A DNA stretch of 64,000 bases, taken from NCBI RefSeq assembly GCF_037042905.1, contig NC_087248.1:1860001-1924000 (forward strand), given 5' to 3'. This document shows, in pieces, positions 1,808 to 48,658 of this stretch. Made by a program: the position numbers and the translations under genes. Position 1 is the first letter of the stretch; each line of letters opens with the position of its first letter. Source of the stretch: Lytechinus pictus. Its lineage: Eukaryota. The notes beneath the pieces were generated by a model. It had not been told where the DNA came from. It did no database searches and worked only from the letters and a program-made list of their open reading frames with translations.

Positions 1808-2394
1808 TTAATTTCACGTAACAATGCATTGATCGGTCCTTGTCAATAGGCAATTATAATCGCATAGTAATTATGTACGCGATCTTTCTCCCTCTCACAT
1901 ACCCACAGACGCACCGTCTCACGTACACGCAGCACGTTCACCTACCCCAACTTCACACACCCTAAACCCCCACACACTCACCCTACCTCTACCTAAAGCA
2001 CATGCAATGTGCCCAAACCCCACAGATTTACGCCGCGTTATCACAGATGTGTATTAAACTGCCTTTCCACTAACATTTTTAACGCTCTAGAGCAAAAATC
2101 CTTTAAAAAATTGATATTTTAGAGTTTAAGAATGGGAATCTATTTGAGCAGACTGGGTCTCTGAACTTTACCATTGTGACGTAATTGACATGATGTGTCC
2201 CTGCTCATTTTGTTCCCCGACGATTATGTTTAATATCTTACCCAAGCATATATCACATACCCTCGTCATGCTCACCCAAGCCCCAAATGTGTGAATATAT
2301 CCAAATCAGCATGGAAGATTTAGGGCCATCGCGGGTTAAGGTATCTAAACAGAAACATAAAAAAGACAAAAATCCTTTGGAATTTATCTTGTTT

Positions 2395-3000
2395 TTTATA
2401 CGGCCGTCTCGACGGGACGTTTTATGGTATACAGCCGTCCCTATGTCTGTCTGTCCGTCTGTCCATCCGTCCGTCCGTCTGTTAACTTTTTCTTGTAAAC
2501 GCGATAACTTCAGTTAAACATAACCTAGGCTCATATAATTGTGTGTGTATGATATTAGCATAGATCCAAGGAAGCCTATTGATTTTGAGGTCAAAGATCA
2601 AAGGTCAAGGTCACACTGACATGTTTTCATCTTACCCTGCTGCAGTCCTTGTAAACGCGATAACTTCAGTTTAACTTAATCTAGGCTCATGTAAATTTGG
2701 TGCGTATGATACTAGCATGAAGCCTATTGATTTTAAAATCAAAAGGTCAAAGGTCAAGATCACATTGAAATATTTTCATTTTACCATTCTGCACTCCTTG
2801 TAAACACGATAACTTCTGTTTAACATAACCTAGGCTCATATAATGTGTATGATACTAGCATAGATCCCAGGAAGCCTATTGATTTTGAGGTCAAAAGTTC
2901 AAAGGTGTAGTCGCCATTTTCCACTTTTCTTGCTTGACCAATAGCTCCATTTTCCGCGTTACAGACGGGCGTATATGTGCTCGCCTTAGCGACACTTGTT
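2395..3000 (+). mobile_element. Non-autonomous Helentron-like (HINE/DINE-1-type) element
   Basis: T-run start, subterminal IR ATACGGCCGTC / GACGGGCGTAT, (GTCY)n microsatellite, three ~150-bp internal repeats, 3' hairpin then TTGTT. Confidence 0.75.
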
Positions 3001-3064
3001 TAAACTTTAAAATTGTTTCATAGTTGCTAATCAACCTACTACTGTGTTTGTATGATATGTTCAG

Positions 3065-3196
3065 ATAATCAACCCTATTAATGGTAGTGTAATGTTTACC
3101 TCATCACTCCGAGAGGATTCATTCGATGAAGAAGAGTTAGAACAAGAGGGTATCCCTCCGCCATTCAACGCATACTCAGCTACTGGTGACGTCACG
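3065..3196 (+). CDS. NAALADase exon ([11 protein letters not shown]...[14 protein letters not shown])
   Basis: tcag acceptor, gtaaga donor, 132 nt, phase 0/0. Confidence 0.9.
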
Positions 3197-6100
3197 GTAA
3201 GACAATCAACCTCGGCGTCCATGCTATTTTCTATTTAAACTTTTACAGCAAAATTCTGCGGTATATGGTTAGTTGTGAAAGAAGAAAATAAAGGACTCTA
3301 GAAATGAAAAAGGAAAGAAATGTAACTCGCATGTGTAGCAGATGACTCGGTATGTATTTTGAATTAATGTTGATTACGGTATAATTGAAGAAAAGAATAA
3401 TTCATCACGTATAAAATTGGTGTAACTATTTAGTTGGTTACAGGGACAGCGGATTAAACCTGAAAGTGTGTGTGTGTATGTGGAGGGTGTTTTGGGGTGT
3501 GTGTATGTGAGGAGGTTGAACATGCATAAAATTCATTTCCACGTTCGTGTATATGGTTACTGAAAAAGTTTGGAGGGTGGGAGGGTGAATTTCCCTCCCG
3601 GCCCATGTTTTCTATTATTATTTTAGGGCTTACCGTACCAAATGATATAGCTGATTTTTTTTACAGCAGCGGCTGTTAAGACCATCTCTCTTATCCAGGC
3701 GCCTTCAAGTAGCTTAAAATTGGATTTAAAATTATCCAATCTTCGGCATGTTTAGTGTGAAATTATTTTACCGCACGTGTTATACAAAGCAGTCCTGTGT
3801 TAACATCTATAACCCAAACCGTCCTTACATACAGCATGCACTCACACAAGCATGTAGAGATAGAAAATCACTTTAACCGTTCCAAAAATAACGAGCTCAA
3901 CTTTCGTGATCTAAACGAGTTACACCATAAACACGGTTTTGTAAACTAAAACTGCAATTTAGAACGAAATATAAAGTTTCGACATATTCCAATGCTATTT
4001 AATGTTTCCATTGTCAACAGTTACCTTACCTTTGGTCAGCAAATTAATGAATAATATACCAGAAACAGTAAAGTTTATACTTATTATTTGATTGGTCAAT
4101 AAATGAATTGATAAATCGTCAAGGACAACTGTAGGCCTTTTTCCTAAAGCTTTTCTTTCCGAATAAAATAATACATATAATGCATTTTTTATCTTTCAAT
4201 ATTTATTGAATTTATAAATGAACTGTTACAAAGTGATGCACCGGCATGACAAAAAATAAAACAATAATTGAAATACGATCATGAAAGTTCATCTGTGTTG
4301 GTTGAAAATAAGTAAAATTTCGAGGCTATTCTTCGGATTTTTCGTTGTGTTGTGATCAAAAGATTAATTTTCACTTAATAATTAAAAAATCAAAAAGGAT
4401 TGACCCAAGAAAAAAAGGTATTTTCATCTTCGAAACATTCTTTTTAATATCGATATCACATGTCTTTGGGAATTTAAGAAATCATGGCATGAATATGACT
4501 TCCCCAAATGTATCTCTCGTCACATTCTTCATCTATTATGTGTGTCATATCCAGGGAGACCTTGTGTATGTCAATTATGGAAGGCTTGAGGACTACGAAT
4601 ATCTTCAGAATCTAACCACAAATATCAACTTCAAGGGAAAGATTCTCATCGCAAAATACGGCATGACAGGGAGAAATACCAAGGTAAGATCTGAAATTGA
4701 TTATATTACAAGGTATCAAAAGGTAAACATGATAGGTGAAATCTAAAGTACAAAATCGTCGAAACAGCCATATAGATAAGTTAGGATAAAAAAAGGCGCT
4801 GAGATATTCCCCTGAAATTTCTTTTATCTAAAATTTATTATTGATATTATGTTTTCAATTCAGTTTATCTGACGGCGGCAGCGGCGTCGTCGACATCAAA
4901 TCTTAAACCGAAGGTTAAGTTTTGAAATGTCATCATAACTTAGAAAGTATATGGGCCTAGTTCATGAAACTTAGACATAATGGTTATCAAGTATTACTAA
5001 ACATCCTGCCAGAGTTTAATGTCACACGACCAAGGTCAAATGTCATTTAGGGTCAATAAAATTAGACCATGTTGGGGGAATCAACATTAAAGTCTCAACC
5101 GAAGGTTAAGTTTTTGAAATGTTATCATAACTTAGAAAATATATTGGCCTAGTTCATGAAACTTGGACATAATGGTCACATGACCGAGGTCAAAGGTCAT
5201 TTAGGGTCAATGAACTTTGGCCATGTTAGGGGTATTTGTTGATTTCCATCATAACTTTGAATGTTTATGGATCTGGTTCGTGAAACCTGGACATGAGAGT
5301 AATCAAGTATCACAGAACATCCTTTGTGAGTTTCATGTCACATGACAAAGGTCAAAGGTCATTTAGGATCAATGAACTTAGATTATGTTGGGGGAATCAA
5401 AAACGAAATCTTAACCAACGTTAAGTTTTTTTTGATATCATAACTCTGAAACTATATGGATTCAGTTCATGAAAATTTGACATAAGAGTAATCAAGCATC
5501 AGTGAACATCCTGTGTGAGTTTCATGTCACATGACCAAGGTCAATGAACTTTAGTCGTGTTGGGGGTATTTGTTGAATTGCCATCATAACAATGAAAGTT
5601 TATGGATCTAGTTCATAAAATATTGATATAAGGGTAATCAAATTTCACTGATCGTCTTGCACAATTCTTTGGTCACACGATCAAGGTCAAATGTCATTTA
5701 GGGCCAGTGAACATAGTATTTTCTCATGATATTATGAATGGTGTTTTTTGTGAATGATTATTCTATTGTCGTTTTCAAAGTCAGCACTGCTGCTACATTG
5801 AATCGCGGAATGCAGGCGAGACTGCCAGAGGCGCTCCACTTGTTTATGGTTGTTTCCTTTTAACCTTTGTATCAACATTATTTAATACAAAGGTTGTTGT
5901 ACTTATATTTAAATAATTGGTTTTTGCACGTCCTAGTGGAAAGTCCTCGTTGAATTCTTTGATTATAATCATATCTATATAATTATATCATCATAAGTTC
6001 GAAGAGGATCGCAGAACATTTGCAGAAGGAAGTGCATTTTAATAAGATTATAACAACTCAATTTTGTTCTTTCTAGATCCTAATACAAATTCGTATAGAT

Positions 6101-9100
6101 TAATGAGATAACCACTTGTGTTCTGCTTCCTGCTCAAGATGTGTTTCTAATGATTTGATTAAACAAACCACATAAAAATAGCGAATAGAACCGATAACGT
6201 ACAATACACGGTGGAAAAGATAGTACAATCATGATGATTAATTAATAATACGTTCATTTGACATGTTTGATATGTGTATCATGTATCATCACGGTATATA
6301 CAGGTTGTAAATGCTGAAAAGTTTGGAGCTGCTGGTCTGATCCTTTTCTCTGATCCTAGAGATCTACCTACCTATGGCTTACCTCATAACGGTATACCCT
6401 ACCCGAGAGGATCATTTCTACCCAAGACGGCGGCACAGAGAGGCTCGATCCTTAAAGATATCGGTGATCCTCTGACTCCTGGCTACCCTGCTAAAGGTAA
6501 AAATTGAAGTTTTTCTTGGCCCCGTGTTACAAAGAGTTACGATTAATCAAATCAATCTCACCTATATGGAAATCCATCAACGTCATATTTTTTTTCTTCA
6601 GGAAATTTGCACAATCTCCTTAGTAAACAAAAGGAATCACACTGAATTTTAAAGAGAGTGATGAATGTATGCAAATACATCATATCTGAAATATATTTTG
6701 AACAAAGATACACTTTAGATTTTGATGTTGCTGGCTTTCCATAGATGTGGTTGATTGAATCAATCGCAACTCTTTGTAAGACGGGCCCTAATTTGTAGAA
6801 GAAGATGATGAGTCTAGTGTAATATATTGTATTTTAAATAAAAGATAGTAAATAGAAAATAACATCAGCGAAAGTGTCAGAAAGTAAAGTACAATAAAGC
6901 ATGTTACATTAGTCGGGACTGTTCCTTATATACTCTTGGATTTCCACTAAAAATCTGAAAATTACATTTTCCTTCGGGAATATTTCAAATAACATACAGT
7001 TCAGTTTTCACAGTGAAGGTGAATGATAATGTATGTGATTAATCCGTTAGTATTAAATCTTGAAATGTCATACACATAGGTAATATTCTTTTCCTAGATT
7101 TTGCATACAGATTAGAATTAAACGACACATCAATACCAAAGATTCCTGTACATCCCATTGGATTCGAAGATGCAGAAAAACTTTTAAGGTAAGGAAATTT
7201 TCATTTCAAACATGATTATACCTGGTAGCGTACTGTGGGTCACGGCGTGGGGGGGGGGGGGGGACACCAGCACATTTTTTAGTCACTTAGTGGGCACGCG
7301 CTCAATAGCATGGTATACTGGTCTAATAGAGACATTTTAAGGACTGTGCCATTAAACGGATATGTATCTCATTGGTAAAATAACGCAAGCGCGAAGCGTG
7401 AGCTGAAAATATTTGATATTCAGACCTAAAAAATGGGCATTATAAGCAAATATTTGTACTCATGATACTAGGAGCCTACCTATCTCACTAAACAAACAAT
7501 GCGAGCGCGAAGCGCAAGCTGAAATTTGTGTATATATTGACCCCAAAGAGACCTAAAAAGGGGCATTGTAAGCAAAATTTTGTAATCATGATACTAGGAG
7601 CCTACGTATTTTACTAACCAAATAATGCGAGCGCGAAGCGCGATCTGAAAAATTTTGACATTGAGACCAAAAAGGGGCATTTTAAAGACTGTTTTTAGGA
7701 ATTCATGAAGAGCAGATATATGACACCAATCCACTAATGCGAGCGTAAGTACGGACTGGAAATGTTTAATATTCATACCTTAAAAGGAGGCAATCACTTT
7801 AATAAGCAGACTCGTGAAAAGAAGCATAGGCCTATGTCACTACATAAAATAATTAAAAACTCGAATTGTGATTAAATATAATGTGTATATCGACTTGAAA
7901 ACGGGATGTATTAGTACCATTTAATTCCCTTTAGCAGGATTATTTATCTCATTAAACAGACAATGCGAGCACCAGGAGTGATTAACACATAGGCACAAAG
8001 TAAATTATTTTTCATAAAGTAATAACAAATATTTATCAAGTAATATAATATTACATATCATATATTATAACGTAATATACAATAATTTCTTCTTCCCCCA
8101 CTATATACGTTTCTCTTTCTTTCTCCCTCTTTTTCTCCCTTTCCCCTGTTTTTTTACCAGCCGATTGGTGGGGGGGGGGGCACGTGCCCCCGTAGTTACG
8201 CCACTGATTATACCTTTTAGTATATTTATACAATGTGGAATCGTGGAATAGATGATGATTTTGGTTATTGTGACCAGTCGATAAATTTGAATAAAAGAAA
8301 ATTAACTATGAAAAAATGTTTTTTTTTTATCATAGACACATAGCTACTTATGGCATTTGTGATGATCATCCATGTATCTTTTGGCTTGAATACCTATTAG
8401 TTTTCTTCTTTCCTTCGACCTACCAAATCTTCAATTGCATTAAAACATTTTATTTGTTGAAACCTATCACTCTTTAACCACTTTTATTATATCCAAAACA
8501 TGGTGTATAATTTTGCTGGCTTCTATAAGTTTAGACTTGATGAATTTCCTTTTGTAAATGAAGTATCAAAGTAAAGTCATGAAATAAATAAATACCATCA
8601 CATTCTCACACCCACATTCAACACCCCACATTCGCTTGCACACACACACACACACACACTAACTCTCACTTAGAATTATGCAAAAGCTCATTCAGAATCC
8701 CGATTCTTAATTTTCATGTTCTTGTTCTGAAGTATATAGAAAAACCAGGATGTAATTCTTAAAGTCTTGATTTCCATTTGACAGGGCATTAACAGGTCCT
8801 CAGCCCGGTGAAGGATGGAACAGAGACCCAAGGACAATCTTTGAAGTAGGTCCTGGATTTAAGGACCCCTATAGAGGAATGTAAGCACGACAGAGTATTT
8901 TTTTCTTATTTATTTGAATTTACCGCAAAATCGTAAAGTACGCATATTATTGAGTATAGAAAATACGGAACGTCGATAACAAACATATTAACATGAACAA
9001 GACATAATTTCACAAAATTTCTCCATCTGAAACTGAAGTGGTCCCAATTCGTAATTGTTATAGTAACAAAATTACGATAATAATTGTCATTCAGTAGCTG

Positions 9101-12100
9101 ATTGCCATTTTGTAAAATAATATTTCCTATTCATTTGTTATCAATCCTCAAAAATGTTGTTTCAAATTGTTGGTGTAGACATGGTTGAACTTTCGATGAC
9201 TCATCCTTTCTTACGACACATCGACACGTTTTTAAAAGATGGGGACATACTTTGGTCTTTTTTTCCTTTTGGTTTAATTATAGTGCACAGGCCGTGGACC
9301 GGGGCGTTGGGTTTAATACACCAGAGCCTAGATATCAAACAATATATTGTAAAAAATATACAAACTTTGGTATTGTTACGTCACGTGTCGATTACCTTGC
9401 GAATCCTTGATCTTTAATGTTGAAATGAACGTAATATTTTGTCTTACAGGAAAGTGAGACTAGCTGTAAATTCCATCTCAGCTCATCATTACACATATAA
9501 CACTGTATGTTTTATCAGAGGAGACATTGAGCCAGGTGAGTGGTATGGTCATTAAAAATGTCAGACGATAAAGATAACAAACATCAAACTATTCACATGC
9601 TTAGGCAACTTTTTAATTCACATAAAATCCTTCTTTCGTTTGATTACATCATACTTACATGTCAATTGTAAGACAATCAATTATTCCTATATAACAATGT
9701 TTTGAAAATACATTTTAATTAGAAATGTAAATGGGTCAAACCTTAAAGAAAAATATGCAAGGTTCATGAGAAAATTGAGAAGAAGAATCTCGAACAGAAA
9801 TAAACATAAGAAGTACAAGTTGATTGAAATAGGTCAAGACTGCCGTTGAAAACACGTAGTTAGATAAAATCTCTCGACATTTACTAATATGGTACGTGAA
9901 ATTACATCATTTATAAACATAGATCGTTACGTCATCGTTGGTAATCATCGAGATGCATGGGCTCTCGGGGCTGTTGATCCTACCAGTGGAACGGCTACTC
10001 TCATGGAAGTATCGAGGGCGTTTGGAAAATTAAAACAAGAAGGTGAATTAATTAACATCGACTTTAAATTCAATGGCTCAATGAATAATAAGTAATTTCA
10101 CAGTGACGTAGGTAAAAATTGTCTTTCCAGCAATGGTTCGTACTGTGAAACCAATTCCTTCGCCAGTAATATGTGTGGCGATTTCTTGAGGTTTTTTTTT
10201 ACTGCCGGGGGATGAGTCTATCCTTTTCTGGTTGCTGTAAAATATAAAGATTTAGACACGCTTCGGCCTCCCTTTTGGGAGTATAATAAAATCCTTGCTT
10301 TAACTCGTGCTCATGGTTCATGGTCATACGCAGAATTATTTTGCTGGGGGAGGGCAGGAAGCGTAAACTTTTTCGAAAAATCTCGAATGCGAGGGAGCAA
10401 AGCGACTGAGCTTGTTATTGTGGCGTTTTTGCATTTTGTAAAGTGAAACCGATGGATTTTATTCATACTTTTGGTGAATTTGGTAATGTAAGTTTTCAAA
10501 ATTTCTGGGGAGGGGACTGCCCCTTCCCCCCTGCTGCTTACGGCCATGTTATGGTTAACAACTCAGTCAAAATGATTTTAATTTTCAAGGGGGGATTTCT
10601 GTACAGAAAAAAAAAAAATAAATAACAAGCCCCCCCCCAAACAAAAAAAAAGCTCCTCACTCCACATTAGTGGCAATTTACTTAAGGAAAAACTTGACAA
10701 GTAATAAGTCCTCACCCCAATTAATGGTGGTTTATGTCTGAAAAATACAAGCAAAAAAATGTCCTTACTTGCGTATGCACCATATATTTCTTGTGGCTCT
10801 CAAGGGCCGGGGAGGGGGGGGGCACGGGTCGGACGCGCCCCTACCCGTGGTACACTATTGTATGGATGGTAACATGAGGCATACACTTCATTGCCATCCG
10901 GCACTGTGTAAGATGACAAAACCTTTGATTTTTGTAAATAAAACTATGGTAGACCTTGTCTAACGTATTGAAACTCACTAAGTCTACAATAATGTATGAT
11001 CCCACTAAATACGTTCAAATTAATAGGCTGAACAGTTGCAAGTCTCGCATTGTTTTTTAATTGATTTAAATCTCTAGATTCATCAGATTTTTCTAATTCT
11101 GGGAGCAAGGAATTATTTTATGATAGAAATTTATTTCAGTCCAGAATCTCTAAAATCGTTTTTTTTTTTTTGACAGGAATTCAATCATCTTTTAGCCGAT
11201 CGCACGATAGCCTATCTAAATTTGGACATAGCCGTTGCAGGTAAGTTGACGTACGTATTTAAAGTAGAGATTTAATTATGGTAGTGTATTTGATTTTATT
11301 CTTGAATAATTATGATCTGTCAATTGATGCAGTGAAAAGTCTAATGTAAAGCCAACCCATTTATGTTGGCACATTTGACGAAATTTTAAAAACTAACGAA
11401 AAGTTGATGCGCATATTGATGAAATGGAGTTCTCTCAAGATTACGAACTATGAAATAGCGCCATCAGACATTATAACTTTCGCTCTGATAATGAAATTCT
11501 CATGTCATTCATTATTTATAGAAAGTATATGGATAAAAATAAATGGCAAAATATCATAGACCGCTTGTATATTACGTTTGACCTTACACAGACTTTTAAT
11601 TTGATTTATTCAAACAATAATGACAACAAAATATTCTGTTACACGGATCTATTTGATATTTTGACAAATTTTTCAGGTAATTATGTACTGTGGACATCGG
11701 CTTCACCTCATTTAAGACCGGTGGTTTATGCTGCCGCCAAAAAGGTAAAGTTGTTTCTTTAAATACCTTAGCTGATATTTTAAACCTGTGTTTGATCATG
11801 TCTTTTGTTTATATATCATCATTTACCATATATCGTTTATTGATAAGGAAACATTGACTACCACGTTCATTCAGTTTCAAATTATGAACATTTCGTCATG
11901 AATATTTAATCACTGAATATTCAAGTAGACATGGAGATAATCTAAAAATTATGTCTAAATAATATTCTAAAAACTATTGTTCGTCCTTTAATAAAGATTA
12001 TCGAGGAATAATTAAGAATTTAGAATACTAGTATTACGAGGACTTTAAATTAGTTGTCATTGAGAGTGAGTGTCAGATGCATTCCGTTTTTCCATAAATA

Positions 12101-15100
12101 AGAATTCATTCGTAGATTATCGCCTTTGGTTAGCTAATTCATAGATGCATAAATATTTCTCAGATGATCTATATAATTCACAGAGGGCTTTGTCTTCATA
12201 CTGTTTTGACAAGTTGCTATGAATTTCTTTAGAAAAGAATCATCTCGCTCCCTGACCGCTCAAGATTATTGTACAAAAATTTATCGATGATTTTTTTTAT
12301 CACAATATTTCACAGATTCCAGATCCTGATAATAATGAGAGATCTCTTTATGATACCATGGTTGAACGAAAGCCAGATGATCTAGAACCACAAAGACCAC
12401 AGTAAGAAAACAACTGTGTAGTTTACAGTGTTGTATATGCATTGGATGTGGATGTGTGGGAGACGACGAAACTGTATGTAGGAGGGTATGTTGAGTTGTG
12501 CGTGTGTACGTATGTGTGTGATTGCGGATATTGTGAGGGTGTCTGTGTGTGTGGTGTATGGATGCGTGTGCACGTGTCGCTATGAGGGTGTGTTTGTTTA
12601 GTGGTGTGGGTGGGTGAGAGGGTTTGTGTATGTGTGAGGGTAAGAGAGACAGGGATTGGGGTAGGGTATTACTACAGGAGATAAACATAGAAGGAATATT
12701 TAAAGCATATTTGGTGTCCAAGGACTTTATCTAAAAGATGTACATATTTTTCAGTGTTTGATTTCTATTCTTTCTTTCAGCGTAAGGAGAACAGCAGGAG
12801 CGAGTGATCATCGTGGCTTTATTATGAGATTAGGAGTGCCATTTATAATGATCTTTTATGTACGTATGTATGCTTTCTCATTCTATAAATTCGTCTTCTA
12901 GTTAAACATATCTTTCATCCTGACCAGATTGCATCAAATTTGTAATAAAGTTAGTAAATTTGCTTTAATTTGAAAGTACATGTGAACGGTTACATTGCAT
13001 ATAATGACGAACATACCTGAATAGTTAAGGCCGAACATTCTAGTTTCATATTTTTTTTGTACAAAAAGAACAAAATCATCTGAATTTTTCTTGCTTTGGA
13101 ACAGGACCTCGAGCAAAATTTAAATGAAAACGGTACCTCATTTGTATTCGGATCTTTCTGTAGAATAGGTAACGTTGGTAAAGTCTATTTCATGTTTATC
13201 TTCCTATGGGTCGTTAAATTTCACTATTAATGTCGTTTATCCTTATCCTTTTCCTAAATATCACAGGGAACAATAAATGGAAGCTTCTACTCGTTATACC
13301 ATACGTCATACGAAACCATCCGATTAGTCGAGGAGTACATCGATCCAGAATACTCCCATCACCTCGCAACAACCCGAGTATTTGCCGAGATGACCCGAAT
13401 ACTAGCCGATTCATTAGTGTTACCATTCGACGTGCATCGTTATTCGGTAGAACTGCTTTCTATGTGGATTGATCTGAATTTTAGCGAAGCATCGGTAGAT
13501 CTTCTGGACCACGGGATATCACTTGGTAAGAGTAGACCAACTCTTTCCAGCCTTGATCAGGGGAAGTACCGGGGTATCTTTATAGGGCGGCGGAGAAATC
13601 CAAACGATGATGAAATTCTCCTCAATTAAATAATAGGTGTTAAATGAAGATATGCAACCGAATTCTTTCTTTTCTATTCTCTTCATTCTTCCCTTTTCTT
13701 CCTATTTTATCTCCCTGTTATTCACACCGGTTTAAAAAACAGAGGGGAAGTTCGCACCCACTCGCGCCGCCCTTGATCTATTTCATTTCGTTCTCTTCTT
13801 CGATTCAAATATGGTTCCTTTTTATTACCATGATTATACTTACTATCACTGGTGTACAGTTGTCTTTATCTTTTTTTATGGGGAGGGGGGGGGGGTGTCG
13901 TGGCGCATTCCCTAAAAGCTCCTGTACCATGACCATGAGATAAAAGGGAAAATTTGTATGAACAGGGAATGGTAAAAACAATTTTTTCGATATTATGATA
14001 AATCTTTCTCTAAATTAGACTTTCCCATGAACATGTTTTGTTCCCTCGCGATCATGTTCGGAATCCCCCGTATCTCAATTCTTGTCTCCTCATTTTATTT
14101 TACCCATTCTCCCTGGCTTTAATATACTTTTATAACCGTTACTTTTTTACCATAAAGAAGGCAAATATAACTTTCATTGCAATTCTGAATTCAGAGTTCC
14201 TATCTTACCGGATAATTTAAAGAAAAAATTGCCATACGCTTTTACATGTTACAGATTTATCGTAATTCAATGTTGAAATATCGCGCAAAGTGCGATTATA
14301 AGGTTGCCCACTTATTGACGAAAGTGGCGCCTGTCCATATTGAGCGGAGCGTTCAAAGAGATTGAGAAAGATCAATACTGTTTCAGAAGAATGTGACATC
14401 ATCATGAAGTGTATCATTAATATTTGACTAGGCTTATCATTTCAAAGTTCGCTAGTGGTTTGCCATGCCTCCAATATTTATGACGCTGACATGTCGGAGA
14501 TATGATATTTGTTTTTCGAACTTATCATTCGAACAAATGATTTAGGGGGCGTGTTCGAGTTGGCAAATTTCCAGACGCAAATAAAACTGAGATGAGATTT
14601 GTGATTCTCCAGTATTGAAATAGGAAATGCGCCCTCTACATTAAACGAATCTTAATGACGACCTTTCACTTTGTATAAGACTGAATTTTTAAAATTTGAA
14701 AATGAGCCTTGGGTGAATACTGAGTACTTATGTATTAAACACTCAAGAAATCAGATTGGTCAACATGTAAAAAGGTCTATACTGTTGGTTAAAACTAAAT
14801 TGCTTGAAAAACGAAATGTCAAATCACTTAACCAATATTTTGTAGGTACGCAATTAAATACGTTTTCTGAGAGTATCGATCGATTTGAAATAAAGGCGCT
14901 AAGTCAAACAAGAATTTCATATTCATTTATTTTCACCAAACATCATTTGTAATTTCAGAACGTTTAAAGGAAGCCGTATACGACTTTATAGGAAATTGTA
15001 CAGACTTCCAGGAAAGGGTTAGCAACGTTAATAAAAGCAGGTATGATAATGTACATTTACTGTCTCCACACTCTAAAAAAAGAGAGTAGAAATTTACCCA

Positions 15101-16670
15101 ATATTGGGTAGGAATGGAACACACATGGTAGCTGGGTAATTTTCCCCCAATATTGGGCAAAATTCATGTGATTGCGTAACACACTATTTTGGTATATTTT
15201 TACCCAACAAATATGCATGTTCCCATTTTACCCAATATTGGGTAAACCTTTTTTTAGAGTGCAGAAACCGACAGTTTGAAGTCAATTGCGTGTTTTAATC
15301 CTTCATTGACAACAATGACACGTGAATGAGTCATTTATTTGGTTTTGGAAACTGGGATCCTTTAAACTTTTTTAATGGCGTTTATGATATGGTTTATGTA
15401 TACTACAAAACCTGGTGGAAATTTAAAAAGACTGAGACCAATTTTCTTCAAACGGAATAATTAGCTGTCAACTCTCAATTGGGTAGTTTTCTTTTGGAAA
15501 ACTTGGTTTGAACATAAGACGACTTTGGAATTACAAAGAAGTTCATATTCTGATTCCTCAAAATCGAGTTCAAGAGCTTACACAAGCCTTAGCTTACGAA
15601 GAGGGTCCCTCCCTCACCATTCCCGTAATGATACTTGAAACAAAATATCTTGTTTCCTGTTTAACAGTTTACAAGGAGACTTTTTAATCAATCTTGAAAA
15701 ACACTTCTAAACAAACAAAGACAGATGATGAATTAACAAAAACTTTTGAAACGCCTTTTATAATAAGATCTCGTCATTGAAACTCACTTATGTCTTTATC
15801 CTAAACATTTTTAAAACGCAAGTTAAGATTAAGAGTAGTCAGATTTATTGATGAGGTTATGCAATTTATTCTACCATAACTGAGGGTATTTATTTATCTT
15901 AATAAAAAAATCGTTATCTCTTTTGAAACTTGTCAGCCCGTCAGCAGTAAGACAGATTAATGATCAGATGATGCAGTTAGAGAAGGCATTTATCAAGGAG
16001 CTACCTGACAATAGACTTGATAGGTGTGTATAGACTTCCGTTGCTTCTCGAACTCTTTATGTCGTCACACTATCTTTCCTACCCCTCTTCATTTATATTT
16101 TCCATAGTGAGCCACCAACAAATTCTATCATTTCTACCATCTGCTAAAATAATAATTTCGGTATCATGTTTATTAGTTTGGAAACAAAGGACATTAAAAA
16201 ACGTAAACGCGTAGAAGCAAAACACACTGCAAAACACCAATTATGAGATTTTAAAATGATGATATTGTGTGCAGTTTGGTGTTGCAAAGTCCAATACGAC
16301 GCAACAAAAAATATACATTTCATCATGTTTATGGTCATTTTGTTTTATTTGTCTTTTCTTTAATGTAATTGTTATACATATAAATCTCCAATCCACTATT
16401 TCAGTAATCTATGGTGATTCCATCTTCTAATTTCCATTGCTTTTCATTAATTAATTACCTTTATACACCAGACACGTCTTATTCTCACCAAGATTCACGG
16501 AATACGACGCCAGAGTTGGGCCTTTCCCAGGCATCGCTGATGCGTTACATAAGATCTTACAAGACTCCAACCAAGAGACACGCTGGAAAGTAGTATCCCA
16601 GCAAGTCGCTATTTTGACGCATGCTATTGAGGCAGCGACCGCTGTTTTGAAAGATGTGACGTCATGGTAA
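3065..16670 (+). CDS. Glutamate carboxypeptidase II / NAALADase-like (M28B) multi-exon gene, 5'-partial; possibly disabled because one exon is not found
   Basis: 15 AG/GT-bounded exons translate to [69 protein letters not shown] and FPGIADAL. Splice phases are compatible at every junction except 10042/11177. Confidence 0.93.
4555..4683 (+). CDS. NAALADase exon, PA domain ([14 protein letters not shown]...GRNTK)
   Basis: ccag / gtaaga, 129 nt. Confidence 0.95.
4870..5845 (+). mobile_element. Non-autonomous Helentron-like element, family 2, 5'-truncated
   Basis: Internal tandem repeats with GGTCAAAGGTCA; ends GCAGGCGAGAC..CCACTTGTTT; reverse copy at 57271-57951. Confidence 0.75.
6304..6496 (+). 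CDS. NAALADase exon ([18 protein letters not shown]...[11 protein letters not shown])
   Basis: cag / gtaaaa, 193 nt. Confidence 0.95.
6518..6788. mobile_element. MITE, PIF/Harbinger-like termini
   Basis: GGCCCCGTGTTACAAAGAGTTACGATT ... AATCGCAACTCTTTGTAAGACGGGCCC inverted ends. Confidence 0.7.
7098..7188 (+). CDS. NAALADase exon ([29 protein letters not shown])
   Basis: ttcctag / gtaagg, 91 nt, phase 1/2. Confidence 0.93.
7223..8206. mobile_element. hAT-like non-autonomous element with internal GCGAGCGCGAAGCGCGAGC array
   Basis: 8-bp duplication ATTATACC (7215-7222, 8207-8214); right end TACGCCACTG, degenerate left end TGGTAGCGTA. Confidence 0.75.
8785..8880 (+). CDS. NAALADase exon ([11 protein letters not shown]...[11 protein letters not shown])
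   Basis: acag / gtaagc, 96 nt, phase 2/2. Confidence 0.9.
9450..9535 (+). CDS. NAALADase exon (KVRLAVNS...[13 protein letters not shown])
   Basis: ttacag / gtgagt, 86 nt, phase 2/1. Confidence 0.93.
9923..10042 (+). CDS. NAALADase exon with Zn ligands ([24 protein letters not shown])
   Basis: atag / gtgaat, 120 nt; HxD and DP motifs of M28 peptidases. Confidence 0.96.
11177..11240 (+). CDS. NAALADase exon ([21 protein letters not shown])
   Basis: poly-T..gacag / gtaagt, 64 nt, phase 0/1; Zn-ligand Asp. Confidence 0.93.
11677..11744 (+). CDS. NAALADase exon ([23 protein letters not shown])
   Basis: tttcag / gtaaag, 68 nt. Confidence 0.92.
12316..12401 (+). CDS. NAALADase exon ([28 protein letters not shown])
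   Basis: cacag / gtaaga, 86 nt. Confidence 0.9.
12781..12859 (+). CDS. NAALADase exon ([26 protein letters not shown])
   Basis: tttcag / gtacgt, 79 nt, phase 2/0. Confidence 0.88.
13267..13525 (+). CDS. NAALADase exon ([11 protein letters not shown]...IDP...[10 protein letters not shown]...HGISL)
   Basis: cacag / gtaaga, 259 nt; YH Zn ligand. Confidence 0.95.
14959..15040 (+). CDS. NAALADase exon ([26 protein letters not shown])
   Basis: tttcag / gtatga, 82 nt. Confidence 0.92.
15069..15261. mobile_element. CACTA/EnSpm-like MITE
   Basis: CACTCTAAAAAA...TTTTTTAGAGTG with 2-bp CA duplication; absent from the paralogous intron (~47400). Confidence 0.8.
15937..16023 (+). CDS. NAALADase exon ([28 protein letters not shown])
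   Basis: tgtcag / gtgtgt, 87 nt; TfR-dimerisation domain motif. Confidence 0.93.
16472..16670 (+). CDS. NAALADase last coding exon (HVLFSP...FPGIADAL...DVTSW*)
   Basis: ccag acceptor, TAA stop at 16668-16670. Confidence 0.94.
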
Positions 16671-26690: not shown

Positions 26691-26921
26691 GATTACTATG
26701 TATATTTCTTAAAGGAGATGGACTGAACTGCCAAAATAAAGGAAAAGTAGGGGATTACACTAAAATTCGCTTTGCAAGTAATTTTTGTTAATTCAAGGCA
26801 GCATTAGCCACAATGATGAGAAGGGAGAACTTTTCAAAAAGTGTCTATAAGAGGATGACATCTCATGGGGGGGGGGGGCTATTCTAATTTGTGAAATTAC
26901 ACAAAACTTGTGATAACAATC

Positions 26922-27257
26922 TAATTTTACATAGCGTTTAATAAATCGGAACAACGCTCTAAGCACTTTACATGTATATATTATTAACCCGGTCAACGGA
27001 TCCTTGCATGCCCGCATACAATGTATGTACTTTCTCCACTCTCTGGGGAGCATTCTAACAAGAGTTCCAAGACTCAATTGCTAGGCATACTACTTAGGTT
27101 TTCACATTCTACCGGGTACCCATTTACAACCTGGGTGGAGAGTGGCAAAGTGTGGATTAACGCCCTGCCAGAGGACGCTATATAGGCCATAGTGGGATTC
27201 GAATAGTCATGACCCTCTGATTACAAAACGAAAGTCAGAACCGCTAAACCACGGCGC
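26922..27257 (-). mobile_element. tRNA-derived SINE
   Basis: Minus-strand head GCGCCGTGGTTTAGCGG..TTCGAATCC; core GTAAATGGGTACCCGGTAG shared with the SINE at 45373. Confidence 0.8.
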
Positions 27258-27279
27258 TTGTATCTTTATACATCACCTG

Positions 27280-27434
27280 ACACGTATTGTTTTCACCAAG
27301 ATCACGAAATACGACGCCAGAGTTGAACCTTTTTCAGGCGTCGCTGATGCGTTACATAAGATCTTACAAGACTCCAACCAAGAGACACGCTGGAAAGTAG
27401 TCGCCCAACAAGTGGCATTTTTGACACATGCTAT
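27280..27434 (+). pseudogene. Isolated degraded copy of the NAALADase last exon
   Basis: Close match to 16472-16626; acceptor AG lost, 1-nt deletion, 3'-truncated. Confidence 0.92.
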
Positions 27435-29108
27435 ATATATTGACGCTACATTCTATACTATACCAGTGTTAAAATGGGTCACTCTGTCGTTTACCCCATT
27501 TTAAAAAAAGTCTAGTCCATCTCCTTTAAGAAATATACATGGGTATTACATAATATAGCATAAACTTATCAGGCATTCATGCTGCACACTGCATTAAAAT
27601 GAAAATATAATGTAAAACAGTGTAAAAATCTGATATTCTCTCAAAGAGTCATGTGTTATAAATCCGCGCTTATGGCGGGTGCGCGTTTCAATTCGTCGAC
27701 ATGGTTTAAAATGCATCATCGAGAATGAGTGAATAATGTGTAACTCAATGAATGATGATAATACCATTAATTTATGCTATTCGATATACATATATATATA
27801 TATATACTCATGATACATGAATTTACCATACAAATAATAAAGTAGATAGTAGAGGTATGGGGAAATTAATATGAAATATCCACACTTCATATCGTACTTA
27901 CCTATTGGGGAACTCACGCATAACGTGTCGACTATCTGACCCGCACAGTGAGATAATATTGTTTGGCAAGCATGTGATTTGTATACTCGCGATATGATAT
28001 GGGGTACGATTTGCTTTAATAAGCGGGCTCCTATTCGCTGGCCCGTACAAAGTTCATATAGACAGTATTTGACGTACAAATCTCTGGGCCTTCTTCACCC
28101 AATTTTCGACAAAAAATTTCTTTTAATATTTCAAGGTGTCAGGGCAGCGATAATATATTTTAGTTCCTGAACACGTGGATTTTTTATTTTAAGTAAAATA
28201 ATACAAGATTATTAGGGAATTGGATAATCGAGAAAGAGATGAGTTATAACTGACATTTTGTGTAATACTACGTTTCCAAGTGAGGTTAACATAACCAGAA
28301 ATACATAAATTTTGTCAGATTTTGGTAATATAACGTTGATTATGAATCAAGAATGTTAAATTAATTTCGTTTACCTATAATGAAGCAATATTCAATAAAG
28401 CAAAGTGACAGTTGCTCTAATGTTGCATTGATGTTTAAAAAAATATGACTAGGGTGCTTATTCAAAGTGACACAATGACCCTTTGAGCATGAGCATCACA
28501 ACGAATCATTTCTTATATAATGGATATTTACACTCTCTTTGCAAAATCAAAACAAACAACAGCATAATAGAGATGAAGAGACTTAGATATTAAATATAGA
28601 ATATAAATGTATGTTTGTAATATTATTAGTATTTATTCATCGATTTAAAAAAACAGCTACAGATTACATATCAACATAATAAAACATGAATGATAAAATA
28701 ATAGAATAATATATCACATTATTACGTTGGCAGAAATTATGCATTATTGCAATAATGTTTACACAATGTAGGCCTACATTCTAAATACATAATATATTCA
28801 AAATGAAAATATCACTATACTTGAAAATTAAGAAATATCAAAGAAAGATGCACTTTGCAAAAAAATCAAGAGAAAAAGTAAACTTAGAAAAGTGAGAGAG
28901 AGTCAGAAAAAAGAAGGAAAAGGATAAGAGAGAAGGGGGAGCCACAGAAAGAGAAACAAATATATGTAATTATAGCCAGAGGTAGCATGTCCACATCTGG
29001 TAATACAAAAAAATATAATACAATAAACATAGCCACTGCATGAATTGAACTAGAGTTTCTCTTCAAATGAAATTCCCACTTATATTATGAGTGATGTGAA
29101 ATTGTTAA

Positions 29109-30145
29109 AGGACAAGTCCATCCCAACAGAAGGTTGATTTCAATAAAAAGAGAAAAATCCAACAAGCACAACACTAAACATTTCATCAAAATCGGATGTA
29201 AAATAAAAAAACTTATGACATTTTTAAATTTCGCTTATTTTCACAAAACGTTTATCTGCACATCCTGGTCTGTATGCAAATGAGGGGACTGATGACATCA
29301 CTCACTCACTATTTCTTTTGTATTTTATTATCTGACATATGAAAAATTATATTTTTTCCCTCATAATCCTGTGAAACAATGTTTTTTTCCTCCCTGAGCA
29401 TGTGTAATTACCATTGCTTAAACACTTTATTGTTCAGTCAAGTTAGATAGATAGATAGATAGATAAATGGTTTATTAATAAAAATCAAGACATCATCGCG
29501 GCTAAGGCCGAATTGCGATGTATTCACTAGGTAATACATGTAAAGACACAAAAAATATTCAAACAATAACAAAGATAATTACAAAATAAATAATACGGAT
29601 AAAGTATGGTATTGAAACTACTTGTGTTGCGGAATTCTAGAAAGGAAAGAGATGGGGAGGAGGAGAGGCAGATAGAGAGAGAGGGGGTGGAAAGGGATAG
29701 AGAGAAAGAGAGGGGAGTGAAGGGAAGGAGTGGAGCAGAAAGTCAGAAGAAAAGAAGGTACAAACACTATGAAAGAGGTAAAAACATGAAGTTGTAAGGC
29801 TGCAAAATTTTACGTTAGAATAAACAAAGTTAGAAGAATTTGAAAGTAAAATATTATCCCTAACACATATTGGTATAGTGGTCATATTGCCAAATCTGTA
29901 AAAACTGAAATATTGAAAATTCAAACAACAAAAAACAAAAGAAATAGTGAGTGCGGGACATTATTGACTTTCATATTTGCATGTCACTGAATCGTGCATA
30001 TAATTGTTTCGTGAAAAATAAGCAAAATTTTAAAATGTCATAACTTTCTTATTTTACATCCGATTTTGATGACATTTTCAGCATTATGCTTGTTTGACTT
30101 TTTTCTATTGATTTAAATCAAAATTTTTCTGGGTGGACTTGACCT
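29109..30145. mobile_element. Kolobok/T2-like MITE with a nested ~430-bp retroposed insert (~29445-29880, minus strand)
   Basis: TTAA-flanked termini as at 1204; the insert ends on the minus strand in AATAAA plus a (TATC)n tail. Confidence 0.8.
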
Positions 30146-31710: not shown

Positions 31711-33099
31711 CTACGCTGAACTATAATCGTTGCTATATGTGTCACTACTTCTGCTCATCCAGCTCTTCAAAGAATTTGATGTAGATGGGCAAATATTATC
31801 TGCATAATCATAAACTTCGTTTTGCATTTCCGCAATATTTCTGTCTGTAAATACATTCGATCTAGGAATTTCATACATGGAATCACTCAAAGATACAGTC
31901 TCTATTTGTCCACACTCCTCTTCACAAATATTTCCAGCACTGTCTGGTGTGTTCTTTTTCAACACCTTTAAAACCACGCAAGATACGAGCGCCACTGTGC
32001 AAGCAATAACAATCACTACGATCACGACTCCACCCACAACTATTGCAATTACGTGATGAACATGAAGAATCTTCCTTTCATTAGCATTGAACGTTGGGGT
32101 CATCGATGTTGAATATGATCCTCTGAGTTGGGGCTTTTCTGACCAATTCCGGGCTGTTGTTGGTTGCAAAGTCACTGCAGAAGAAGCGTTATCCATATTC
32201 AAATGACTCATTTCATCTTTGGAATCCTGATGAAGATTATTTGAACTCAAAATTGTATCAGTTTGGTGTATTGTGAATTCCCTTTGTCCCAAAGAAATTG
32301 ATTCTCGAACTGCATCAGGTTTTATATTTTGTGAACATGGTGGTTCACACGTTTGAGTCGAGATTGGTGGAGTGATTGTCCCGGTATCAGTAATGAGCAC
32401 CGTGGAATGTTTCATTTTAAGAGGTTCAATGATACACTCGAGCTGTTTACCAGGAAATTCAACTTCACTGGTTACTATGCAGGCGATTTCATGAAAATAC
32501 AGTTCACGTGTCATTAGAATCTGTTGGGTTAAAACTTTAAATTGGCCTTCAGTAGCTGAATTCGTAGCAACGGTATTATCATAAAACACTCTGCTCTGAT
32601 TCCATCCGATATCAACAGGCGGGTTGCAAGATTTCACCAGACATCGAAACGTAATAATTTGGTTTATCTCTGTACTCATACCATCATGGTCGCAGTGTAT
32701 ATCTTCCTTCGTTGGAAAACACTGTACAAAGGCCCAAGCGCTCCTTGAATCGTAACAATCTTCATTTGCACGATCAATGACATAACAAGTGACAAATCTG
32801 TCCCTTCCTCTGATCGTGTTCAGTAAGAGTGTAGATGTTAATAAGTTATCATTTCCAGAATCTTCTGTTTTCTTTGCGTTATGTACACTGGGAATAACAC
32901 TCCATTTCACAGTATGCGATTCTTTATTAACGTTTCTCAATGAGCAACTGAAAGTAGCACTATTACCTTCTGTTACCTGTATATTACTCGGTTGAACAAA
33001 AAAATCATGAGATGTGCAAATGTGATCTGAATAAACCACCGGAATATATGAAAGCGACAGTATGGACATACTAAATGTAGCAACTAAGTGCCAATCCAT
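31711..33099 (-). CDS. Intronless type I membrane receptor: two Ig domains, S/T-rich stalk, TM, Tyr-motif tail (subfamily B), 462 aa
   Basis: Signal peptide; FFVQPSNIQVTEGNSATFSC..W..C; FRC..NPPVDIGW..IAC; long hydrophobic TM; tail with MYEIP, VYDYA, TYSNDY. Confidence 0.88.
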   Translation of the reverse strand: MDWHLVATFSMSILSLSYIPVVYSDHICTSHDFFVQPSNIQVTEGNSATFSCSLRNVNKESHTVKWSVIPSVHNAKKTEDSGNDNLLTSTLLLNTIRGRDRFVTCYVIDRANEDCYDSRSAWAFVQCFPTKEDIHCDHDGMSTEINQIITFRCLVKSCNPPVDIGWNQSRVFYDNTVATNSATEGQFKVLTQQILMTRELYFHEIACIVTSEVEFPGKQLECIIEPLKMKHSTVLITDTGTITPPISTQTCEPPCSQNIKPDAVRESISLGQREFTIHQTDTILSSNNLHQDSKDEMSHLNMDNASSAVTLQPTTARNWSEKPQLRGSYSTSMTPTFNANERKILHVHHVIAIVVGGVVIVVIVIACTVALVSCVVLKVLKKNTPDSAGNICEEECGQIETVSLSDSMYEIPRSNVFTDRNIAEMQNEVYDYADNICPSTSNSLKSWMSRSSDTYSNDYSSA

Positions 33100-33779
33100 A
33101 ATGGATGCTGCAGTAACGATAGTGGCTATTCCATGTTCAAATCTATCGAAATGTCAGTGATGTGAAGATATCGTTACATGCATGCCCCTTTTTTATTCAA
33201 TTGCTATCATTACAAAAAAGGAGAAAAACATGATTAAGCTTCGAAGGTGTAGCAATTGTCCCTCTATACTCAAGAAAGTTTTGATTGCCATCAGTCATTT
33301 AGAGTGCATGTTCTTCATCGTTAAGATGAACAAGTGCTTGTCATAACCTCTTTAAAGGCCGAGAACAGGGAAGACTGTCTCTTAAATTGACTTACACATT
33401 AATTCTCATACAAATTACAAACAGAAATGATGGAAGAGAAGGCGACGTTGATTAAGTTCCGATAAAATATTTATTCACCCTTTCTTGATGGTAGAAAGAT
33501 TGTAAGAATTACTGAAGAAGCACAAATATGAAATATCGATGAGAAGTATACAAGTGAAGAAATATGAATAACAATTATATGAAGCTATAGGACCCCTATG
33601 TTTACCGACATGGGATGGGCCAGGAGAACAAACTGTGTGATATATGCGGGATGGAGCGGTAGCTCAACTCCCCACATCTCTCTAATATCCATTTTGTACA
33701 AATGTATTTATACTCTGGACTTGATATGTGACTCACATTGTTCTACTATTACAATAATAATGACAAGTTTTATTGTTAG

Positions 33780-34400: not shown

Positions 34401-34854
34401 AGATGCACTGTTTAAGAAAAAAAATGTTTTTTTTCCTAAATGCTAAAGGTTAATGAGTGATCTAAAGCAGATACGAACCAATAGCGCCATCTCGAGTCCT
34501 CAACTACTCATACCTGGCCAGTTTCCTGACCCATAACGCTAGTGTAGTCTAGTAATATAGACCCACTTCAATGATAACATGCTAATTAACTACTCAATAC
34601 ATTTATACCGCAATATATGTTACCAAGTAGCAAAAAAATTACATTTTAGTTTCTCTATACAAATACAATTATAGGTCAATTTATTCTCTGTAGTATTAGT
34701 AGATTTATGAAAACGTATATTTTAATACTATGTATTTATAACATACAGTCAGTGAGAGACCACACACAGTTCACTCCCTCTCTAAAACAAATATTTCGCA
34801 CATTTCAGATCCTGAAAACGACGATAGATCTCTCTAAAATACCATGGTTGAACG

Positions 34855-46730: not shown

Positions 46731-48058
46731 TTCCAGCATAGGTCCATGATTCCAGTAAGAACGTGGCATCATCATCATGACATCTATCATTTCAATTTGA
46801 CCTGGTTAATTATTTCAAAGTTCACTAGTGGTTTGTTACGCCCCCAATGTTTATGACTCTAACATGTCGGAGATATGATATTTGTTTTTCGAACTTATCA
46901 TTCGAACAAATTATAGAGGGTGTGTAGAGTTGGCAAATTCCGAGCCGCAAATTCAACTAAAATGGGATTTCCAGGAATGGAAATGCGCCCTCTACATCTA
47001 AATGAAGCTTAATGACGCCCTTTGAATATCGAAAATTGAGAAGTATCCTTTTGTGAATACTGAATATTTATTCATGTCTTATACTATCAGAAAAATCAGC
47101 CTGGTTAACATATAAACATACCTATAGTCAGTTGATAAAAAGGTAATTTAAAAAAAAAATCGCAGATCACTTAGCCAACACTTTGTAGGTCCGTAATTTC
47201 CAAAACATTTCTGAGAGTATAAATTGCTTTGTAATAAAGGCCCTAAGTCAAACAAGAACTTGTCATTTTCAAAAACTTCATTTTGATTTCAGAACGTTTA
47301 AAGGAAGCCGTATACGATTTTATGGGAAATTGTACAGAATTCCAGGAAAGAGTTAGCAACGTTAATAAAAGCAGGTATGATGATGTAAAGTAACTGTTTC
47401 CAGAAACCGACAGTTCTAAGTCAATATACATGTGTTTCCCTCAATTGACCAGTAAACGAGTCTTGTCTTTTATATGTTTTGAGGAAACCGGGATCCCTCA
47501 AACTTGTTTTTAATGCCGTCATGATCGGGGTTACAAAACGTGATGGGAAGTTTTGAAAGAGACCCATTTTCTTCAGACAAAATAATAAAGCTTTCAACTC
47601 CCAATTTATTATTTTTACAAGCCTCCTATGTCGAAGAGGGTCCCCTCCCACACCATCCCTGTAACAATACAACATTTCAAAGTATCTTTTTTCCTTTATC
47701 AACAATTTACAATGAGACCTATTAATCAATCTTGACAAACACTTCTAAACAAACAAGGACATTATAATGAATTCACAAAAACTTTTGAAACGACTTTTGT
47801 TATAAGACCTCATCGTTGAAACTCACTTATGTCTTTATCCTAAACATTTTTTAAATGCAAGTTGAAAAATTAAGAGTTATTGATGAGGTTGTTACGATAA
47901 ACTTTTCCAAGATAAAATACTTAGTTGCGCAATTTATTCTACTTAAGTAAGGGTGTTGATTCATCTTATCTTATCTCATCTGTTTTGAAACCTGTCAGCC
48001 CGTCAGCAGTAAGAGATATTAATGATAAGATGATACAGTTAGAGAAAGCATTTATTTA

Positions 48059-48658
48059 AGGTCAAGTCCACTCCAGAAAAAATGTTGATTTGAATAAATA
48101 GCGAAAAATCAAACTAACATAACGCTGAAAATCTCATCAAAATCGGATGTAAAATAAGGAAGTTATGGCATTTAAAAGTTTCGTTTGTTTTTCACAAAAC
48201 AGTGATATGCACAAATCAGTGACATGCAAATGAGTCAGTCGACGATGTCCATCACTCACTATTTCTTTTGTTTTTTATTGTTTGAATTATACAATATTTC
48301 CTTTTTTACAGATTTGACAACGAGGACCAACTTGACTGAACCATACTAAACAATGCTAATTCCACATGTTCAAGGAGGAATTAATCCTTGTTTCACTTGA
48401 CAATGGGGAGAAAATAAGAATATTTCATATTTCACATAATAAAATACAAAAGAAATAGTGAGTGGATGACGTCATCAGTCTCCTAATTTGCATACCGACT
48501 AGGATGTGCATATAACTGTTTTGTGAAATTAAGCGAGACTTTAAAAAGTCATAACTTTCTTATTTTACATCCGATTTTGATGAAATTTTCAGTGTTATGC
48601 TTGTTGGATTTTTCTCTTTTTATTCAAACAAACTTTTTGTTGGGGGTGGACTTGTCCT
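48059..48658. mobile_element. Kolobok/T2-like MITE inserted in a pseudo-exon, reverse orientation to the 1204 copy
   Basis: Splits ...GCATTTATT / AAGGAA..CCTGACAATAGG at a TTAA. Confidence 0.88.

Follow-up and report, generated by a model that had tools for sequence, protein, structure and literature searches.

In human GCPII (FOLH1/PSMA) and GCPIII (NAALAD2), metallopeptidases of MEROPS M28B, the region around the active site is encoded by three exons of 120, 83 and 64 nucleotides (nt). In the solved GCPII structures, the part of the M28 catalytic domain that the middle one (exon 10 in the numbering used here) encodes is buried. Catalytically inactive M28B relatives, such as the transferrin receptor and NAALADL2, have kept the M28-like fold without the catalytic or zinc-binding residues. 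Another group of described loci, the unprocessed pseudogenes that exchange sequence with a working neighbour, is exemplified by human CYP21A1P beside CYP21A2 and GBAP1 beside GBA1. Both comparisons bear on a NAALADase/GCPII-like gene in a stretch of 64,000 nt from the sea urchin Lytechinus pictus, termed the window (C4:1860001–1924000, C4 being contig NC_087248.1; all other coordinates are window positions). Judged by its sequence, this M28B metallopeptidase gene, here called copy B, is a tandem duplicate of an intact gene, copy A, situated 83 kb upstream. Copy B shares the 120- and 64-nt exons, but the 83-nt exon with the two active-site glutamates E424 and E425 is missing. It is probably a tandem paralog that was disabled not long ago and is now a young unprocessed pseudogene or else a null haplotype that is still segregating.

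Zinc-ligand motifs, exon structure and domain content place copy B in the M28B (GCPII/NAALADase) lineage. Homology between copies A and B spans positions 1939–16670 and includes 15 exons of equal length; both copies lie on the same strand, intron positions are kept and the introns are homologous. Exon 9 of copy B matches the solved structures of GCPIII and GCPII with E-values of 5e-13 and 1e-10, respectively. Positions 9919–10041 align to residues 369–408 of full-length human GCPII (9hlw_A), the histidine and the aspartate of this segment being the zinc ligands H377 and D387. Likewise, exon 15 (13267–13524) aligns to residues 547–607, and the histidine of its SLYHTSYET motif is the zinc ligand H553. 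The exon 11 peptide (...AYLNLDIAV) carries an aspartate that may be equivalent to the zinc ligand D453; its alignment with NAALADL1 (4twe, ...AYINVDISV) is weak (E = 0.92), the query of 21 amino acids (aa) being too short for a significant match. All three domain regions (PA, Peptidase_M28 and TFR_dimer) are represented in the exons of copy B, but past exon 9 the frame is lost and only the TFR_dimer part stands in an open reading frame (ORF).

Copy A was found by a DNA search with the interval between exons 9 and 11 of copy B (10043–11176), which gave a match on the same contig. It consists of 18 coding exons (C4:1771116–1793399) and corresponds to XP_063954933.1, a protein of 800 aa annotated as N-acetylated-alpha-linked acidic dipeptidase 2-like; the gene model is 98.6% identical to this entry, with the differences confined to one exon-14 donor. 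PA, Peptidase_M28 and TFR_dimer domains are all present, and exon 1 encodes VTLAVGIAILCVGIGIGVLVGHF and provides the start codon and the transmembrane anchor. Between exons 9 and 11, copy A carries an exon of exactly 83 nt in the splice context tttttctgtag/GATGG...ACAGAG/gtaacc. The encoded peptide aligns to residues 410–436 of human GCPII (9hlw_A), and its two glutamates correspond to E424 and E425. The first-pass annotation, which had described an 83-nt exon with these two residues for human FOLH1, is borne out by copy A in both size and content. It had, however, taken the locus in the window for the NAALADase gene itself, and this locus is instead a damaged tandem duplicate, with the intact copy outside the window. 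The 83-nt exon is also found in both copies of the gene in Lytechinus variegatus (Lv1 and Lv2). Genome-wide searches of the 812-Mb L. pictus assembly with the exon 10 peptide retrieve only copy A and 9–11 more distant paralogs, and it is copy A together with these roughly ten paralogs that carries the catalytic function in the genome.

In copy B, exons 9 and 11 are located exactly where the first-pass annotation had placed its 120- and 64-nt exons (Table 1), and the absence of the catalytic-glutamate exon between them is substantiated as well. No W..EE peptide is found in the six-frame translation of 10043–11176, and exon 10 of copy A has no match in the window by tblastn or blastn, which excludes a diverged form of the exon there as well as an inverted one. 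Relocation of the exon to another site is likewise ruled out, since the assembly contains no other close copy of the 421-nt segment of copy A that bears exon 10, and the exon 10 peptide finds only copy A and distant paralogs. A NAALADase-like exon at 26698–27540 was considered as the missing exon and rejected, as it is an exon-18-like fragment. The mismatch between a phase 1 end and a phase 0 start, from which a frameshift had been predicted, takes effect as expected: direct splicing of exon 9 to exon 11 adds 22 wrong residues and ends at a stop codon at 11678–11680. A transcript of this kind, frameshifted and with a stop 22 codons on, should therefore be a target of nonsense-mediated decay. 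Among the checks proposed along with the first-pass claim, tblastn finds no exon in the interval, no transcript contig in four runs shows a 10042/11177 junction, and the L. variegatus copies do have the exon.

Table 1. Position of copy B features in the window.
Feature	Position	Strand	Description
Intron 1 piece	1939–2089	+	5' limit of detectable homology to copy A; exon 1 not found further upstream
112-nt stretch	2090–2201	+	Replaces ~2.6 kb of copy A including exon 2
Exon 3	3059–3196	+	138 nt; acceptor (3057–3058) AT, AG in copy A
Exons 4–8	4555–4683, 6304–6496, 7098–7188, 8785–8880, 9450–9535	+	Open, lengths as in copy A, AG/GT
Exon 9	9923–10042	+	120 nt, AG/GT, ends in phase 1
Proximal intron 9	10043–10318	+	~76% identical to copy A; old lineage; last 8 nt, TCATGGTT (10311–10318), form one copy of the target-site duplication of the transposable element
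hAT-like miniature inverted-repeat transposable element (MITE)	10319–10548		230 nt; terminal inverted repeats CATGGTCATACGCAG and CTGCTTACGGCCATG; 8-bp target duplication TCATGGTT/TTATGGTT
Intron 9 end and deletion junction	10549–10584	+	Begins with the second copy of the target duplication; junction at ~10581–10584
Rest of intron 10	10585–11176	+	~91–94% identical to copy A; mostly a second repeat element
Exon 11	11177–11240	+	64 nt, AG/GT, starts in phase 0
Exons 12–18	11677–11744, 12316–12401, 12781–12859, 13267–13525, 14959–15040, 15937–16023, 16472–16670 (including stop)	+	All open, lengths as in copy A, AG/GT

An alignment of the interval in copy B, copy A and both L. variegatus copies accounts for the loss of the exon. 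Copy B lacks about 320 bp, made up of 141 nt of intron 9, the 83 nt of exon 10 and 96 nt of intron 10. The breakpoints in copy A (1167/1488 of the aligned copy A locus, L004) are each preceded by CAAG(A)TT, which to judge from the sequence is the mark of a microhomology-mediated deletion. A single deletion between the short direct repeats CAAGTT and CAAGATT would thus have removed exon 10. The second repeat element, in intron 10, is common to copy A and Lv1, and in copy B its first bases were removed with the deletion.

The first-pass annotation had also described repeat-like DNA in the interval, and a genuine interspersed repeat is indeed present in the form of the MITE at 10319–10548. This element differs visibly, by eye, from the consensus of 20 copies and has a 17-nt internal deletion. 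Once the MITE and one copy of the target duplication are taken out, copy B stays in register with copy A, Lv1 and Lv2 along intron 9, and the local alignment past the MITE scores 28, compared with 11.3 ± 1.8 for shuffled sequences. As homology is unbroken across its site, the element merely inserted into the intron and did not bring about the exon loss. The possibility that the MITE caused the deletion was accordingly rejected, given its own target duplication, the continuous homology at the site and a junction that lies some 35 nt further on. More likely, the MITE inserted into intron 9 before the deletion occurred, a few dozen bases from the later breakpoint and unrelated to it. Its divergence gives no date, because the sequence age of a cut-and-paste element does not tell when it inserted. 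The B-specific flank at 10215–10330 is unique in the genome, and a donor locus for it was accordingly rejected.

The MITE family itself has members of ~230–250 nt with the terminal inverted repeat CATGGCCGTACGCAG and an 8-bp target duplication, and a first look yielded at least 790 candidates genome-wide. The 20 other copies compared (L035–L054) are 74–85% alike.

The loss of exon 10 is not the only lesion of copy B. Exons 1 and 2 are not found within 120 kb upstream of it, either by tblastn with the copy A protein or by blastn with the copy A exons, and each of the two is single-copy in the whole genome. At the 5' limit of the homology, positions 1939–2089 are 90% identical to intron 1 of copy A (C4:1775907–1776062) and match intron 1 of both L. 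variegatus copies in the same way. Homology resumes at 2202, where positions 2202–2395 are 94.5% identical to intron 2 of copy A (C4:1778695–1778893). Because the 2.6 kb of copy A in between, including exon 2, is represented by only 112 nt, exon 2 has been deleted from copy B. The absence of exon 1 leaves copy B with neither a start codon nor a membrane anchor. In addition, the acceptor of exon 3 is mutated, with an in-frame AG 6 nt downstream of the AT. The earlier view that all other exons are open with good splice sites consequently does not hold, given the two absent exons and the AT acceptor of exon 3. A tandem repeat with a period of ~157 bp lies in intron 2 of both copies (2406–2906 in copy B and C4:1778955–1780100 in copy A) and comprises more units in copy A.

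In this assembly, copy B has neither the E424/E425 exon nor the N-terminal cytoplasmic tail and single membrane anchor of the type II topology, nor a continuous ORF. With exon 1 absent, exon 2 deleted, the acceptor of exon 3 mutated and exon 10 deleted, it is predicted to be unable to make an enzyme. NCBI annotates only a 220-aa ORF at copy B (XP_063954935.1), which spans exons 14–18, from a methionine in exon 14 to the normal stop. This protein carries B-diagnostic residues and a complete TFR_dimer domain (E = 5e-21), and is most likely a remnant ORF of the disabled duplicate. Copy B has retained its introns close to a functional paralog and bears disabling lesions, both of which are observed in pseudogenes of the unprocessed type. 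Supply of exons 1 and 2 by read-through from copy A is unlikely, as ORFs with immunoglobulin (Ig) domains lie on the same strand between the copies and the frameshift would remain.

Sea-urchin genomes show high heterozygosity and duplicated loci are difficult to assemble, so that exon 10 might be present in the animal and lost only in the assembly, through local misassembly or a chimeric path between copies or haplotypes. Intact-looking, strongly constrained exons would fit this explanation, as they are what a working gene shows. However, the deletion junction is a clean microhomology junction within colinear sequence, and there are no runs of N between copies A and B or near the interval. A B-type exon 10 is not found on any unplaced contig, the NCBI annotation of the same assembly finds only the truncated ORF, and copy B has two further lesions at other sites, namely the loss of exon 2 and the mutated acceptor. 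An assembly fault is therefore regarded as highly improbable. The two copies are also not falsely duplicated haplotypes of one gene, as their homology is limited to the gene body and 69 kb of other sequence, free of N and including a long interspersed nuclear element and Ig-domain ORFs, lies between them.

Transcript data were taken from Logan contigs of four small runs of one study, each holding 5% of the words, and were compared with positions 9300–12700. Every run contains one spliced contig of 2–3 kb that covers exons 8–13, and these contigs confirm every splice site used within the covered exons. They differ from the window at 12, 4, 1, 1 and 1 positions in exons 8, 9, 11, 12 and 13, which are exactly the numbers of differences between copies A and B, and the bases are those of copy A. 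Moreover, compared with the window they have 80 additional letters, placed between 10043 and 11175; together with three boundary bases that also fit the window, these make up the 83-nt exon of copy A. Copy A is thus transcribed. Neither a B-type contig nor a 10042/11177 junction was seen in the contigs of the four runs, which can drop rare variants. Each of the four runs also has transcript contigs that include pieces of the MITE family, at high depth.

These data also bear on the idea, raised in the first-pass annotation, that copy B encodes a non-catalytic isoform. Such a product could arise by two routes: a cryptic 44-nt exon within the MITE (10444–10487, with a GTAAGT donor) restores the frame and leaves it open from exon 3 to the normal stop, and the 220-aa ORF corresponds to a complete TFR_dimer domain and could be made as a dimerisation-domain tail. 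A non-catalytic product would, in addition, explain the constraint on the exons on either side of the gap. Yet the 44-nt exon belongs to a set of 58 frame-preserving AG...GT candidates that chance would produce and lacks a W..EE motif, and a replacement of exon 10 is unlikely to leave a stable fold. The loss of exons 1 and 2 deprives copy B of a start codon, a signal sequence and a membrane anchor, a B-type transcript contig is missing from the four runs, and a tail-only product would not explain the constraint on exons 3–9. Production of a non-catalytic protein by either route is quite improbable. The specific proposition that selection has kept copy B as a non-catalytic NAALADase-like protein, with the MITE mini-exon in place of the catalytic one, is hardly probable at all; its transcript would have to start at an unseen 5' exon or by read-through from copy A. 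The isoform part of the first-pass interpretation thus finds no support, while the part that proposed a recent null allele or young pseudogene agrees with the clean microhomology deletion of ~320 bp and with the absence of relaxed constraint.

This absence is apparent from the pattern of substitutions. The 15 shared exons are 98% identical at the protein level between copies A and B and differ by 48.5 synonymous and 14.5 nonsynonymous changes, which correspond to 0.13 synonymous (dS) and 0.011 nonsynonymous (dN) substitutions per site and a dN/dS of 0.08. Changes private to copy B, polarised with copy A and both L. variegatus copies, comprise 27 synonymous and 10 nonsynonymous ones (binomial P = 1e-10 against neutrality), a ratio that resembles those of the other three genes. 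Gaps in the alignment of the two copies amount to 167 events in 12.5 kb of intron, as opposed to none in 1777 exonic nt. Relaxed constraint, which would appear as a dN/dS moving towards 1 and as indels in exons, is not seen in copy B. As the surviving exons show no such relaxation, the inactivation would be recent, and it is from this pattern that its timing is inferred. Even if all B-private nonsynonymous changes were neutral, the neutral period would not exceed ~0.012 substitutions per site; it could be somewhat longer if gene conversion has refreshed the outer blocks.

Identity between the two copies is a mosaic, with 91–95% in a 5' block, 77–82% in the centre (~6700–10300) and 87–99% in a 3' block. 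In the central exons 7–9, copy B is an outgroup to copy A, Lv1 and Lv2 (dS 0.31–0.38, compared with 0.08–0.21 among the others), and the introns of this block are ~75% identical to those of copy A. A closer donor for the central block was sought and none is present in the assembly, copy A at 75% being the nearest. Copy B is therefore best described as probably an old paralog that predates the split of L. pictus and L. variegatus, and the pattern of identity indicates that its outer parts have since been homogenised with copy A by gene conversion. The central block holds 17.5 synonymous and 6.5 nonsynonymous changes, with ~31 nonsynonymous changes expected had it been neutral throughout (dN/dS ~0.09), and no exon indels, with ~8 expected at the intron rate. 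Because this block is constrained and unconverted, copy B would have functioned as a gene through most of its existence. The sequence of events that fits best would thus be a paralog maintained by purifying selection through most of its history, parts of which were homogenised with copy A and which was disabled only recently.

The same mosaic, with its sharp step at the deletion junction, could also have arisen if copy B was born broken, that is, if the duplication skipped exons 1, 2 and 10 and a long-dead copy was kept A-like in its exons by conversion from copy A and its diverse alleles. Several lesions that remove exons are easier to reconcile with prolonged decay than with a recent death, and the other NAALADase fragments in the window show partial duplications to be common here. 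Differences between copies A and B in the 3' half, moreover, lie within the allelic range of copy A: an older A-type protein of L. pictus, XP_054753954.1, differs from copy A at 9 positions in this half and copy B at 5. Such an origin is nevertheless rather unlikely, since the central block (exons 7–9) escaped conversion and yet has a dN/dS of ~0.09, is free of the exon indels expected in a dead copy and has no closer donor in the assembly.

Several observations weigh against a recent death of copy B. The step in identity from ~80% to 94% stands exactly at the deletion junction, which suggests that the most recent conversion to the right of the deletion came after it. In the converted blocks, the low dN/dS may only mirror selected allelic variation of copy A, and gene conversion from copy A could hide an older death in both the 5' and the 3' block. 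Three to four independent lesions fit poorly with an inactivation recent enough to show no relaxation. The MITE is old, and its age does not date the deletion. The lack of B transcripts among the Logan contigs does not prove that copy B is silent. Finally, the broken copy B may be fixed, may be one haplotype of a heterozygous animal or, less likely, may reflect an assembly fault.

The A-type protein mentioned above, XP_054753954.1 (P0270, 537 aa), differs from copy A at 11 residues in all (2%), and several of its states are common to L. variegatus. This divergence suggests either that allelic diversity is very high here or that the locus varies in copy number. In L. variegatus, the orthologs XP_041461189.1 and XP_041461191.1, both flagged as partial, are arranged tail to tail about 500 bp apart (CM031018.1:6724558–6794414). 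Each of the two loci (L031 and L032) contains 500 Ns, and the copies differ by a dS of 0.13. Either genuine inverted paralogs or two haplotypes placed next to each other in scaffolding could account for this arrangement. The 220-aa protein, used to look for an ortholog of copy B in L. variegatus, gave no useful match.

The surroundings of copy B contain further NAALADase fragments. An exon-18-like fragment at 27298–27435 is 80% identical to copy A at the amino acid level, an exon-13-like fragment at 34751–34870 carries a stop, and a block of intron 15, exon 16 and exon 17 (46770–48056; 77–78% DNA identity, 85% amino acid identity in the exons) ends at a repeat. These fragments indicate repeated partial duplications at the locus. 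An interspersed repeat of ~610 bp occurs in several copies and both orientations within 180 kb, in the window at 1194–1811, 29102–29444 and 48051–48666; one copy immediately precedes the 5' end of copy B, and another adjoins the exon-17-like fragment. Long open frames with Ig V-set/Ig_3 domains are located on both sides of copy B, at 31714–33153 and 60836–61864 on the minus strand and at C4:1840936–1842165 and C4:1846139–1847446 on the plus strand, which suggests a duplicated cluster of Ig-superfamily genes interleaved with the NAALADase copies. Two ORFs of retrotransposons without long terminal repeats were identified on the plus strand, one at 37887–39782 with an endonuclease domain and a PHD finger, the other between copies A and B (C4:1821356–1824058) with endonuclease and reverse transcriptase domains. 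Positions 59826–60081 consist of 256 N.

For annotation, this locus is not evidence that sea-urchin NAALADase has lost its catalytic glutamate, as the working gene lies 83 kb upstream. Copy B has apparently been caught at the moment of its death, with gross structural lesions and no measurable loss of constraint. Should it be a segregating null haplotype, it would cleanly illustrate presence/absence variation in a marine invertebrate that is highly polymorphic and serves as a genetic model.

Compared with GCPII and GCPIII, the L. pictus genes show the same exon architecture around the active site, with the equivalents of the zinc ligands H377, D387 and H553 in copy B and the E424/E425 exon in copy A. 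Copy B, without this exon, the anchor exon and exon 2, is as assembled not an active member of the group. Three of the exons of copy A (1, 2 and 10) have been lost from it and the MITE has been added in intron 9, whereas the repeat in intron 10 is shared. The transferrin receptor and NAALADL2 have substituted individual residues in an intact fold; copy B, in contrast, has lost a whole exon with a frameshift. It more closely resembles CYP21A1P and GBAP1, each a tandem duplicate beside a functional gene (CYP21A2 and GBA1, respectively) with deletions, splice changes and patchy gene conversion. Unlike these two pseudogenes, however, the exons of copy B display no excess of nonsynonymous changes or indels, as would be consistent with a very recent inactivation or a segregating null haplotype. 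Copy B can thus be assigned to a known class, the unprocessed pseudogenes that stand beside a working gene and exchange sequence with it, and is unusual within this class in that its exons do not yet show relaxed constraint.

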